A DNA stretch of 63,440 nt, the filler included, from Choristocarpus tenellus KU-1152 (lineage: Eukaryota; Protista; Phaeophyceae): the NCBI GenBank assembly GCA_964200185.2. It is 9 parts of 9 records of this genome, joined end to end, with 100 filler letters (N's around TTAATTAATTAA, not from the genome) between each part and the next. Parts side by side here need not be neighbours in the genome. Positions count along the whole stretch, not along the records: positions 15,579 to 20,733 come from CAXNAD020011681.1; 8 more parts are not named here. One strand, 5' to 3'. The position numbers and the translations under genes are program-made. The notes under the pieces are model-generated. The model saw only the letters and a list, made by a program, of their open reading frames with translations. It had not been told where the DNA came from and did no database searches. This document shows, piece by piece, positions 15,579 through 20,733 of the stretch (within the stretch, counting starts at the first letter, position 1; each line of letters opens with the position of its first letter).

Positions 15579-15689
15579 CGCAAAAAACCCATCCTCATAG
15601 TCCCGCGCCTTCCTCAATTTTGAGATTCCCCTGTTCTATTCCTGCACCCCAGGGTGGGGAGGAGGTAGGGAAGCACCCCACGAATCTAA

Positions 15690-15960
15690 GAAACCAATGG
15701 CACGTCTAGACAGACCACCTGCGTTGTTACCGATAATATTTGACGTAGGTGGGATTTGACCGCCCCATTCCTGCCATAACCTCCAGTTCCTCTCCCCCCT
15801 ACCACATATTTTGCCAGCTTATCCAGGAAACGTTCCGCTTGCTTGCTGAGGCGCCCAAAACTTTCCACCGCGAAAGTGTTGAGGCTATAATAACTACGAG
15901 GATCAAAAGAGCCCTTGTAGTGAGTGCGCTTTCGCGTCTCAGTTGTAGCAACAGTTACAC
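15690..15960 (-). mobile_element. Non-LTR retrotransposon C-terminal fragment (RLE/CRE-like)
   Basis: RKRTHYKGSFD...FAVESFGRLSKQAERFLDKLA...LRQILSV resembles the C-terminal tail of restriction-like-endonuclease non-LTR elements. Confidence 0.65.
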
Positions 15961-16654
15961 CATTTCTGATTAATGAATGGAAGATGGGGGGCGGGGGGTG
16001 GGCTGCACTTCTTTATTATTATCATTATTTTTATTGTTTATTTTCTTACGCCTCTTCTATTTCATATATGTTGTGTCCATTGCTTTCTGTTTTCTACAAA
16101 GTGCAATCTATAATATCTTTCACATTTTCCACAACTGTTACTTTTTTATTACAAGTTGTGATATGATTGGTTTTGCTTTTTCCCTGAAACATCTACAAAA
16201 TGTTAGAGGGCATAACAATAAAATATATATTTATTTTCACAAATTTCATCTCACTATATTCTACTATATAATTACATACACGTCATACGTCGTTGAGTTA
16301 CAAATAGATTGAGAGTAATATTGTACATAGATCACATCAAAACATCCCATTTTAAGGCGACATATTCAGTTTGGAATGGGGGTAGTGACGCCTTAACATG
16401 GGACCGGTTTATGTTTTTTTGTTTACACCTCTTCAGTTTTTGAACTAGACTTCTCCCCCCCCTGGTCCCTCCCCCCCAATCAATTTGAAAATTGAGATAT
16501 GACTTCTATTGTATCACCAACAAGGGCAGACAACAACAAGATAGATTAGTGTTGTGAGTTTCGTGAGTACCCTTGCCACTAGCCTTGTCGGTAACTTTGG
16601 CACTCTCCCATCTGGAGTACCCTAGGATTCGGTGCGTTGTAATCGCAACTAGGA

Positions 16655-18028
16655 ATGTCGAACAGTGGTGGTTTGACAGATTTTTGGAGTGAGCCCTGGA
16701 CAGCGTCAACTTGGAGCCTTTGGTCCAGCCAAGGAGCTGCATCTGCTGGTCTGAGGGCCCTGAACTGGAGAAAAGGTGCAGAAATTGACCCGTGGTCTAA
16801 CAACTGGGGAAGCACGCTTGGACCTGGAGCACCCTTGCGAGAGACTCTCAAGGGAAATGGAGGGCAACCTTTTGGGCGGGAATGCGAGACCGCGCCCAGG
16901 ACAATGGGGAAGCGCACAATTGAGCTCCTCCCCACAGACGAACAGCGTCAGACGCTCCAAAAGGTGCGGGAGTGTACGTTAGAATGTGCTGTTCGATGGA
17001 CCTTTCTTTTGAACTCTCTCAGCTAATTTTTGCTCTCACATTCCCCCAACTTGATTCTCCAGTGGTTTGGTGTTGTACGCTGGACCCATAACCGGGCCGT
17101 GGACGCTCTCCGCCGCGATCCCTATGCGAGTAAGGGAAGCCTTTGGGCTGCAGTTGCCGCGGCGGAATCGGATCATGCGTGGGTCTCTGCTGTTCCCAGA
17201 GCTGTCCGCGATGATACTGTCCGAGAACTTGTGGAGCAATTCAATGCCTTGCCAAGACGGGGAGGAGTTGAAGACGGGCTCAAGTACCGAACTAGAAAGG
17301 ACCGTCTAGAACGGGTGGTTGTACGAGCATCGGGGTAAGTGACGGTCAGGAATTTTGTGTTAGTAAGTAGAGAGGTCTGAGAATGTTTCAGGTTTTATTG
17401 TGCCTCCAAGCCAGGATGTACAACATACGGGGAGGAGAAGGTTTAACCAACAGTATTCGGTAGGCAATCTTCGCTTAATCCTAAGTGCTCTTCATGATAT
17501 AGGTCTTGGATCTGGGACAGCAACTTTTAAACTGAGGTACTACTGCTAACAAAATGATTTTACACAGCAGTGCCAACAATGCGGCGATATATTGCTCTCG
17601 CTCAGTATGGGTGAGGAGTGAAGTTCTGTGTTGCAGCGGTGCTCTTAGAATCTTAAGTGGCAATGTAAAGCTCTACCTCATACAGACCAACAATAAAGTG
17701 CTATATTGGGCCTGTTTTGTTGCTCAGGGATTAGGCAGCACATGTGTTAAGATGCCCTTTGTGGCGCTGATATTGTGCCGTTTTCTTTTCTGAATCCCTA
17801 CTTTCGCAACAAGTACTACTACAACACCTTTTTTCCTGCCTCTCCACTTTTGTCAGGTACTACGGGGGTATTCCTTATCCTGACTACTTTGGTCGAACAC
17901 CATTGGCTGCTTCGGAAATTCTCCCAGAGCGACTGTCTGGAGACGGTGTCCTAGTCCGTAGCTGTGAGCGCTTCTTCCTGTGCATTCCTACCTTCGAGAA
18001 GGAAAACAAATGGTCGGCGACAGCTTGA
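16655..18028 (+). CDS. Spliced, RuvC-less Fanzor2/TnpB-derived protein, 250 aa; exons 16655-16963, 17063-17334, 17857-18028
   Basis: Splicing at AAG|GTGCGG...CTCCAG|TGG (phase 0) and GG|GTAAGT...TGTCAG|G (phase 2) gives one open frame: ...KRTIELLPTDEQRQTLQK|WFGVVRWTHNRAV... (OrfB_IS605 HTH/WED-REC start), WVSAVPRAVRDDTVRELVEQF, LKYRTRKD, YPDYFGRTPLAASEILPERLSGDGVLVRSCERFFLCIP, then TGA at 18026-18028. Confidence 0.88.
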
Positions 18029-20682
18029 ATGTACAATTGTTCAGATAGCAGGGAGTGATTTAGGGGATGCCTGATGAAGCTATCACTCGACTTGATAGTG
18101 GACACTGCCCTCCTGGCTGGCACTCTTCCCTTTTCCCCCTCCCACTACAGTCCATATATGTTTGTTGTTGCTCTTCTCCTGTTTTTTCGTATATTTCTCT
18201 CTGGTTTGTTCCTTCTTGGTCACATTGTTTCAAATATTATTTCAAGCTTTCGTCCTCTATCAGAGAGGTGAAGCGTCTTGTGCATGCGCTTGCTGAGCAT
18301 TCCCCACCTTGAGTGTGCATACAGGTGGGGTAGGGGAACAGGGGGGGGTGAAGGGAAGGCAAGAGAAAATACTGGAGAGCATAGCTGCACAATTAAGTCC
18401 TGGTGTCTTATATGACATAAAAGTGAGGCAGGGAGATAGATGGAGAAAGCCTTGCAGTGTGTAGGGATGTCAGTGGCAGGCCTTATCCAATATGACCCTG
18501 CAATCTGCCAAAGTGAATATACTGCTTGTGAGGAAGGATTTGTTTGACAAACATAGGATCGTTCACGACCTTTTACTTAGCTCTGGTCGGTGTTTATTTG
18601 CTGTAGTACAGTAACATTTTCCTTGTGTGCGCATCTCGTGCTGGGACCCTTTTTTTCTGCATGTGTCTTATGTTATTTATTGTATAGGCAAGCGGGGGAT
18701 GCATATTTTGGAGGTTAACAGCGGGGTTATTTTGATTGATGCATAGGGTTAGGGTTCGCGTCTTGCGAAGTATAGAGAATTAGTCCTGGTGTAGAATCAG
18801 GACTAATTTCCTGTAGACACATTCTCTGCTTCTTCTACCCACTGTACTGATACCTACCAGGAAGGTTGTGGTTGGTCAGAGTGTTGTATGGATCGAACGG
18901 TAATTGTAAGTGATAGTGTGACAGGAGAAGATTGGATAGAATATTGTTAGTTGTAGTATCAAGGGGTGGAGTGGTCAATGTATGAAGTGATGGATAGATA
19001 GGACCATGGACAGGCGCACCCATTTCTGCGTGATTTTTTTTGTTGTTGCTTGGAAAGCATTGCACAACAAACTTTGTAACTATTTCAACATCATGGATAG
19101 TGAGCCGTTGTGTTTGCCAGATAGTAGCATAGGCACATATGATGCTAATCTGATCTACAGAGCATGTTGAATGGTGCATCCACTGCATTCATACCACAAA
19201 AGTTGGGGCTATGGAGAAGAGGGTTGTAGGTGGGTTTTTGTGTATTCCACAACTGCATCAAGTCTGTCAATTCGACCTACCTTTCAGTGCTTTGAGATTT
19301 AAATTCATTCAAGTGCAGCATATTTCAAGAAATGAAAAGATCGAGGAGACAGTACAGTGAAGGGAAATTATTGCTCTTCCCTCTCACCATGACACCGTCT
19401 CCTGGTCTCTCTTCCTTCACGCTCTTGGAGTAGAGTAGCAGTGAGCAAGGTGGGTAGCTCGGGGTATTCTGATGGTGACAAACAGGTCCTGAAGTCCTTA
19501 TGTGGGTGGCAGTGCGCACTTTTGATGTTGCTTGTCAGGTGAAGATAGCTAACGTATTTGGCAGGTGGCAGCAGTGTATTGAGGTATCAGAGGGTTATTG
19601 ACATTGTGATGCAATGGTCACACACAGGGCAGTACATTGCTAGAGAGGCCTCTCTACTGTAGACCACTGTTGCATTAATGATGTGCTCACACTTGAGTAT
19701 ATACTGGAATGCAGTACTGACTCGAGCAGAGCATTTTCATAAGTGGTTGTTCTTCCATTGAGAGTGTGTGATTGGTGCTGCTTATATTTCTGTAAAACCT
19801 TTGAAAGCAAAGTGGTATCTAGTATTTACATGCCAAGTGACCTGTGCCTAGAACAGTTGTCGTTCAGCAGCAGCCCCTATTCCCAAAATCGATTTTAAGG
19901 GGTGCACTGCTGAAGGAAAGACAAAACCAGTATCATTGGCTGATACACCCACCCAAGGGTGTATTCCACCACTGTAGCCAAATGAAAGACAAATGAAAAT
20001 AGGAAATGCAAGTCAACTCTCTAGGACATTGCGGATCCCCTTGAACATTCTGGCAAAGCCAATCAACACATGGCCACCTTCACCCCACCGCCGTCCTATT
20101 TCATTCTATTTTGCATCCTTATCTTTTTGTCCCCTCAAATTTGGGGGCAGTAGGAATCAGAGCCATCATCGTTATTCCCTCGTTCCTGATACAATCTCTT
20201 ACATCAATCAACTTTGTCACACATCCATTTTGTTAGTTTTGCTCGAATCATCCCTTTAAACCCATCTGCTCTATATGACACAATGCACAGTGGCTCAATG
20301 GGGTGCGAGTGATGAGTATCCTCGCTGAATCTGCTTGAACTCATCCTGATGTGTGCCGATCCATGTTTTGTTGTACGGGAATGGTAGATGAAGCAAGCCA
20401 ACTTGTACATGCTGTGTCAGTTGCTGCAGCTTTCATACCTTATGTTGAGGGCAAGAAAAGTGATTGACATTGGGATCTGTAAATTTGTTGTGTGAAGATG
20501 GCTTAGAAATGTGGAATATTTGAGGGGAATGCTGTATGCACAGAGCAGCAGTAACCATAGGGTCTCTCTTTATAGTGTACCTCTTGCAGTGCAGGAGGAA
20601 CCAACTATTGAGTACACTTTGCCACGTTGAGATGAATGTTTGGCATTATTCTTCGTAGAGGTTAGGTTATATATACTGCATG

Positions 20683-20733
20683 GAGGGTACGAGTTTTGCC
20701 CTGTTTGTCCATTTGGGGCTTGGCTTCCCATGG
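20683..20733. mobile_element. MITE fragment at contig end
   Basis: GAGGGTACGAGTTTTGCCCTGTTTGTCCATTTGGGGCTTGGCTTCCC matches the 15045 and 50609 copies. Confidence 0.85.

Follow-up and report, generated by a model that had tools for sequence, protein, structure and literature searches.

The brown alga Choristocarpus tenellus carries a gene that encodes only the recognition lobe of a Fanzor2 protein, and this gene is almost certainly a spliced and expressed brown-algal host gene domesticated from Fanzor2, an IS607-type TnpB homologue. Fanzor2 is a transposon-encoded RNA-guided DNA cutter and a relative of CRISPR-Cas12, of which the DNA-recognition half has been kept for more than 230 million years in brown seaweeds. 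Domestication is concluded from the common end region of all family members, their intron positions, dN/dS ratios, invariant alignment columns, the gene tree, the flat read depth over the gene, and the acyl-carrier-protein neighbour.

Gene structure and transcript

The analysis covered positions 15579-20733 (CAXNAD020011681.1) of the window, i.e., of the whole stretch of 63,440 nucleotides, along which all positions below count unless a locus is named. Whole-protein analyses used deposited database proteins, including P0010, and the window sequence itself was queried exon by exon. P0010 (CAM9772184.1; 250 amino acids) is the NCBI product of the 5155-nt contig and is identical to the window exons, exon by exon. 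The following features were identified:

16465..16654, + strand: transcribed 5' leader (at least from 16465, the start of the spliced X2 contig)
16499-16549, + strand: upstream ORF of 16 codons within the leader, read from the sequence
16655..16963, + strand: coding exon 1, amino acids 1-103, with the aromatic N-terminal motif, a low-confidence linker, the first WED strand, and the start of REC helix 1
16673..16768, + strand: N-terminal motif, amino acids 7-38
16964..17062, + strand: intron 1, 99 nt, GT..AG, phase 0, between K103 and W104; position common to orthologues
17063..17334, + strand: coding exon 2, amino acids 104-194, with REC helices, the basic KYRTRKDR linker, and the WED strand containing R191
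17335..17856, + strand: intron 2, 522 nt, GT..AG, phase 2, inside G194; position common to orthologues
17857..18028, + strand: coding exon 3, amino acids 195-250 plus TGA, with the second half of WED; its end precedes the start of RuvC-I in Fanzor2
18029..19776, + strand: 3' UTR of at least 1.75 kb, unspliced in the X2 contig, with neither a RuvC or zinc-finger remnant nor an Rfam match

A first-pass annotation of this DNA had proposed an intact gene of three exons that splice into a 250-codon ORF. The exons of 309, 272, and 172 nt indeed add up to 753 nt, corresponding to 250 codons plus TGA, and both introns contain pyrimidine tracts. Three public runs of one study (X1, X2, and X3) contain the stretch. 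Both joints are exact in contigs of X2, in which the 99 nt of intron 1 are skipped at depth 141 and the 522 nt of intron 2 at depth 98; a minor X2 contig of depth 12 keeps intron 2. This run has no cover immediately upstream of the leader. In X1 and X3 the stretch is unspliced, the splice joints are absent, and the depth is flat and low. From the coverage pattern we infer that X2, a run not recorded as RNA, is a transcriptome. An ungapped X2 contig (17856-19776) spans the stop codon and has no splice downstream of it, which places the stop at 18028 in the last exon, ahead of the long 3' UTR.

Several repeats were noted in the piece. The 3' UTR contains an inverted repeat of 18 nt with a 9-nt loop at 18771-18815. 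High-copy repeats occupy 15579-16235, with a summed depth of up to 1e5, and a minus-strand ORF at 15686-15868 presumably resembles the C-terminal end of a non-LTR retrotransposon of the restriction-like-endonuclease type; this left-flank repeat had no match in Pfam or NCBIfam. Another very high-copy repeat begins at the right edge of the contig (20681-20733).

The protein corresponds to the recognition lobe of Fanzor2

All TnpB/Fanzor motifs quoted in the first-pass annotation were found in the protein, and the Fanzor2 origin proposed there agrees with both profile and structure matches to Fanzor2. The HTH_OrfB_IS605 profile (PF12323) scored 33.2 bits, compared to a cut-off of 21; the window exons, submitted singly to Pfam and to PDB sequences, gave only a sub-threshold match to the same profile. 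A search with exon 2 against 1.84 billion proteins returned four close relatives, followed at E values of about 1e-4 by five Fanzor2-type proteins, of which four are full length and contain PF12323, PF01385, and PF07282. The full-length Fanzor2-type protein P0005 matches the mimivirus Fanzor2 structure 9B0L (E 3e-26), and the family profile aligned with P0005 at 99.25% probability (E 5e-20; 41% identity over 153 columns).

Block-mean pLDDT of the AlphaFold model lies at 67-90 across amino acids 81-240 and is low before amino acid 80. Foldseek comparison of the model with known structures revealed a WED+REC fold from which RuvC is absent. Its best match pairs residues 83-241 with residues 131-309 of ApmFz2 (9B0L; Z 16.4, rmsd 2.9; Foldseek E 2e-6), and TnpB and Cas12 proteins rank next; the alignment behind the model contained N-terminal halves of Fanzor2, so that Fanzor2 rows guided it. 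The Atlas's own model of P0010 likewise matched TnpB-family proteins, and a single-sequence fold of P0001 (pLDDT 33.5) gave no usable model. ApmFz2 has an N-terminal domain that extends to residue 130, and D324 is the first of its catalytic residues (PMC11832414). Given these limits and the match to residues 131-309, the protein represents the recognition lobe in full and ends at the boundary between WED and RuvC.

Absence of the nuclease half

The stop codon had been placed before RuvC-I in the earlier annotation, and this applies not only to the protein but to all family members. Each of them lacks the complete nuclease lobe, in accordance with the proposed whole-domain loss, and all orthologues end 5-14 residues past the last WED strand, versus 211-231 in full-length Fanzor2. 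Remnants of RuvC or of the zinc finger were also sought by tblastn with the C-terminal halves of five full-length Fanzor2 sequences, which found no match in the window piece at E<=10; the N-terminal halves of the same five sequences matched it at E of about 1e-10. Over all loci, the C-terminal halves gave nothing significant (best E 0.055) and the N-terminal halves matched all algal loci. The zinc finger (Cas12f1-like_TNB) is absent in Pfam scans of the family members and present in P0005, P0007, P0008, and P0009. Downstream RuvC exons, into which transcripts might have continued, are ruled out by the unspliced X2 contig together with the tblastn result.

Signs of mobility were equally absent from the places searched: there is no serine recombinase or other transposase among the called neighbouring genes and no terminal repeat was found at the window locus. 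Depth over the gene is flat and low, and Choristocarpus has no second copy at 80% likeness. As judged from its sequence, the protein is predicted to be unable to cut DNA by itself, cleavage in cis being impossible without RuvC.

Conservation in brown algae

Orthologues were found in Discosporangium, several Ectocarpus species (Esi_0274_0027 is the Ectocarpus orthologue), Scytosiphon, Hapterophycus, Nemacystus, Cladosiphon, Undaria, Laminaria, and Ascophyllum. The family thus spans Discosporangium, Ectocarpales, Laminariales, and Fucales, with at least 10 genera; E. fasciculatus and Ectocarpus sp. 12 contribute two records each, which may be strains or sexes. No member outside the brown algae was identified among the species-assigned matches of these non-exhaustive searches. 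Scans of viral and metagenome contigs returned no family member, the sole match (L012) being an unrelated ORF that resembles a bacterial sigma factor.

The proposed co-option by the host is borne out by orthologues with a matching stop, matching introns, and dN/dS values far below 1. Introns 1 (K|W, phase 0) and 2 (inside Gly, phase 2) have identical positions in all eight other mapped loci, and Ectocarpales and Ascophyllum possess one additional intron in the N-terminal tail. In one lineage, an additional intron splits exon 2 (L003, 526-756 and 1510-1737), which also points to a long history as a host gene. Counted exon by exon, dN/dS was 0.04-0.18 in 14 of the 14 pairs with measurable dS, with values of 0.04-0.08 within the crown group and 0.087 for the window versus Discosporangium. 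Comparisons of the window with crown species show saturated dS, with amino-acid identity still at 61-63%. Among 10 members, 83 of the 167 core columns are invariant.

In the gene tree, the family forms a clade with 100/100 support, in which Choristocarpus and Discosporangium are placed outside the other nine members (98/96 support). NCBI taxonomy lists Choristocarpus under Sphacelariales; we take it to be now placed in Discosporangiales, together with Discosporangium. The common ancestor of the non-Discosporangiales brown algae has been dated to 236 Mya, with an earlier split of Discosporangiales (10.1101/2024.02.19.579948), which gives the gene a minimum age of about 236 million years.

An acyl-carrier-protein gene adjoins the orthologue in Ectocarpus and Scytosiphon, is fused into the Cladosiphon gene model, and is kept as a neighbour across Ectocarpales; outside Ectocarpales, where the loci are short, no synteny was seen. 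The fusion of the Cladosiphon and Nemacystus models to the acyl-carrier-protein gene probably reflects annotation errors, as does a wrong exon after intron 2 in the Ectocarpus sp. 13 model (the models concerned are P0016, P0032, and P0013). The Discosporangium orthologue has an EsV-1-7 repeat gene as its head-to-head neighbour (L001 5292-8312).

Truncated Fanzor/TnpB fragments are common (P0006; Atlas clusters), and the RNA nature of X2 is not on record, so a neutral transposon relic, an assembly artefact, or a mis-annotated longer gene had to be weighed. A relic would have been expected to lack expression and conserved orthologues. However, the stop region, the introns, and the low dN/dS are kept across four brown-algal lineages, and the transcript contig is spliced with no further splice. 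The X2 splicing, the common introns, and the dN/dS values rule these readings out for practical purposes.

The N-terminal tail

The N-terminal motif contains 13 invariant residues (L7, F10, W11, E13, P14, W15, T19, W20, S25, Q26, A29, G32, and W38). The linker that follows it has about 45 amino acids and about 175 in the crown group, where it is enriched in His, Ser, Gly, and Pro; crown-group N-termini are accordingly His-, Ser-, Gly-, and Pro-rich tails of 209-224 amino acids. Tails of this composition occur in many nuclear regulators. The N-terminal part has no obvious basic nuclear-localisation stretch, with 6-12 K/R in 83-224 amino acids.

The motif is similar to a PFW..W..SWF stretch that occupies the corresponding position in the structured N-terminal domain (RuvC-R, thumb) of Fanzor2, and part of this domain completes the RuvC fold of ApmFz2 (PMC11832414). 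Furthermore, the protein breaks off exactly at the lobe boundary, and the second chains of several Cas12f dimers, resolved to only about 200 residues (7wju_B, 8dzj_B, and 9nzp_B), match the model. These observations would suit a protein that is one part of a split Fanzor or serves as an accessory or inhibitory subunit, and that would pair with a separate RuvC-zinc-finger protein or with full-length Fanzors of transposons or phaeoviruses and either complete or block them. We regard this as quite improbable. The homology of the motif to the Fanzor2 N-terminal domain is non-significant (HH probability 2.6%; HMM scores inside the shuffle range), there is no RuvC-only gene within up to 10 kb at any locus, and the Fanzors that Bao and Jurka described from Ectocarpus belong to the Fanzor1 type, in IS4-type transposons and viral inserts (PMC3627910). 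In addition, near-invariance across 236 million years is unlike an arms race with mobile elements.

The putative nucleic acid contact surface

REC and WED are the domains that read the transposon-adjacent motif, TAM (PMC11832414; PMC10432273), and in ApmFz2 the TAM is read by R194 and H215 of REC and E260 of WED (PMC11832414). The groove for the omega-RNA pseudoknot requires WED, RuvC, and RuvC-R, and RuvC alone holds the rest of the scaffold (PMC11832414). Given this division of contacts, the DNA-duplex clamp appears to have been kept and most of the RNA-holding surface lost; the description of the protein as a guide-recognition half, made in the first-pass annotation, is therefore not supported, because the groove needs RuvC and RuvC-R besides WED.

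The core carries a net charge of 0 to +5 in the family, against about +15 to +21 in Fanzor2, and this drop agrees with a loss of the RNA-holding surface. With respect to basic positions of Fanzor2, 13 were lost, several of them in WED strands, and 11 remain, most of them in REC and the KYRTRKDR linker. Together with 5 newly fixed ones, the latter make up the 16 basic positions conserved family-wide. A weak alignment (E 0.13) pairs the invariant R191 with E260, one of the TAM-reading residues of ApmFz2, and a transitive alignment suggests Ala at the position of the TAM-reading H215.

Search for a guide RNA

The earlier suggestion that the protein is possibly RNA-guided was not supported, since RuvC holds most of the guide scaffold in Fanzor2, no non-coding element is common to all loci, and the core charge is mostly lost. 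There was no Rfam match in the window or in five orthologous loci, no omega-RNA-like element conserved family-wide was found in the loci compared, and non-coding sequence of the window had no match in orthologous loci except one of 26 nt in Laminaria. A stable multi-stem fold (z -3.8 over 171 nt) is predicted on the + strand at 19856-19985, just beyond where the transcript contig stops; it is single copy, and no counterpart was found in orthologous loci. Most loci contain folds with z < -3, scattered over positions that do not correspond.

Three Ectocarpus loci, Scytosiphon, and Laminaria share a conserved non-coding block of about 35 nt, 3.2-4.4 kb downstream of the stop, at these positions:

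L005, 9112-9144
L006, 17359-17391
L009, 17224-17256
L010, 16802-16832
L011, 10655-10684

The block begins with a near-palindrome; the window locus and those of Discosporangium and Ascophyllum lack it. Candidate roles are a 3' UTR element, a site for protein binding, or a segment of a small RNA. Any omega RNA could have diverged or be made elsewhere.

A non-cutting DNA-binding factor guided by an omega-like RNA supplied in cis or in trans, and thus a eukaryotic analogue of TldR, would be consistent with the intact WED+REC fold, the long 3' UTR and the stable fold near it, and the fact that some C-terminally truncated TldRs bind DNA with their guide (PMC10705468). However, TldRs retain the overall fold and the RNA-binding interface (PMC10705468), whereas the algal protein wholly lacks RuvC, the source of most scaffold contacts in Fanzor2; the non-coding comparisons yielded the 26-nt match alone, Rfam none, and the fold of the window, lying beyond the transcript contig, is one of many scattered ones. 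We therefore consider such a factor rather unlikely. More broadly, it is doubtful that the protein is RNA-programmed in vivo, whether by itself, using a reduced guide, or in a split Fanzor of which it supplies one half and whose RuvC-like half and guide RNA are encoded elsewhere. If it were, brown algae would possess native RNA-guided DNA recognition for gene or chromatin control, kept for more than 230 million years.

Putative function

The most likely role, which we put forward as putative and with about even confidence, is that of a guide-independent DNA-binding regulator built on the TAM-recognition clamp. The protein would act as a double-stranded-DNA-binding transcription or chromatin factor. 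Its REC/WED clamp, formerly a TAM reader, would now read a short DNA motif through protein contacts alone, and the disordered N-terminal tail with its invariant aromatic motif may recruit partner proteins. This role is favoured because the TAM-reading domains and 11 basic positions are kept, R191 aligns with a TAM-reading residue, and the tails are like those of nuclear regulators. Arguments against it are the drop in charge, the 13 lost basic positions, the apparent Ala at the H215 position, the lack of an obvious basic nuclear-localisation stretch, and the guidance of the structure model by Fanzor2. Moreover, a reader of a 3-nt TAM would on its own have low specificity and affinity unless it dimerized or was partnered.

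Alternatively, the REC/WED surface for the guide-target seed duplex may have turned to structured RNA or R-loops, making the protein a guide-independent binder of RNA or RNA:DNA hybrids in post- or co-transcriptional control. The conserved basic residues R109, R152, K177, R179, and K182 sit in domains that also line the heteroduplex channel, and the conserved block of Ectocarpus, Scytosiphon, and Laminaria could be an autoregulatory site. However, the other wall of this channel is RuvC (PMC11832414; PMC10432273), the net charge of the core fell, and the block is missing in the window, Discosporangium, and Ascophyllum, its four sequences being too few to establish a structure. This alternative is judged unlikely. 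A protein scaffold without any remaining nucleic-acid contact would fit the near-neutral core of the crown group (pI 6.8-8.7) and the conserved aromatic motif of the tail, but 16 basic positions are conserved family-wide, 11 of them from Fanzor2, and we hold it to be very improbable.

Relation to known systems

The algal protein shares the WED1-REC-WED2 fold with Fanzor2, the IS607-type eukaryotic TnpB represented by ApmFz2 (PDB 9B0L), but lacks the bridge helix, RuvC with its rearranged catalytic D/E/D triad, and the zinc finger. Omega RNA, transposase, and terminal repeats were not found at the loci searched, and, unlike Fanzor2, it is encoded by a fixed host gene with conserved introns under purifying selection. 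Like TldR (PMC10705468) and the exapted TnpB/dCas12f proteins (PMC10691335), it is a TnpB-family protein out of its transposon that is non-cutting, kept by the host, and probably regulatory. TldR and the other exapted proteins come from bacteria, retain most of the fold together with a guide RNA that has been demonstrated, and lost their activity through point changes or trimming of the C-terminus, whereas the algal protein is eukaryotic, has lost the entire nuclease lobe, and has no evident guide. The analogy to TldR drawn in the first-pass annotation is thus a loose one: it holds for a nuclease-dead TnpB homologue outside a transposon, but not for a TnpB fold with its RNA-binding interface, as the whole RuvC is gone.

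CENP-B, FHY3/FAR1, THAP, and ZBED proteins are eukaryotic transcription factors derived from transposase DNA-binding domains. They, too, are mobile-element proteins, or DNA-recognition parts of such proteins, fixed in the host; the algal protein differs in that its source is an accessory RNA-guided nuclease and the module is the TAM-recognition lobe.

Exapted TnpBs have been catalogued in prokaryotes (PMC10691335), and according to the TldR paper the domestication of eukaryotic Fanzors was still to be found (PMC10705468). A text search of the main Fanzor papers found no mention of domestication, and neither the gene name, the Pfam accession, nor 'TnpB' was found in the literature search or in the Phaeoexplorer supplements. 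Databases label the proteins 'unnamed', 'hypothetical', or 'transposase putative helix-turn-helix domain-containing protein'. As far as could be found, in a literature search that was incomplete for subscription papers, there is no earlier description, and this would be the first domesticated eukaryotic Fanzor.

Host domestication of TnpB is known in bacteria, where it gave rise to Cas12, TldR, and dCas12f. The route seen here differs in that the whole nuclease lobe was lost, and the recognition lobe emerges as a self-standing module that selection can keep. This bears on the question of guide-dependent versus guide-independent targeting and on minimal DNA-binding tools. The orthologue Esi_0274_0027 makes the gene directly testable in Ectocarpus. 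For brown algae, the finding brings to light an uncharacterised gene that goes back to the root of the class and to the rise of complex multicellularity.
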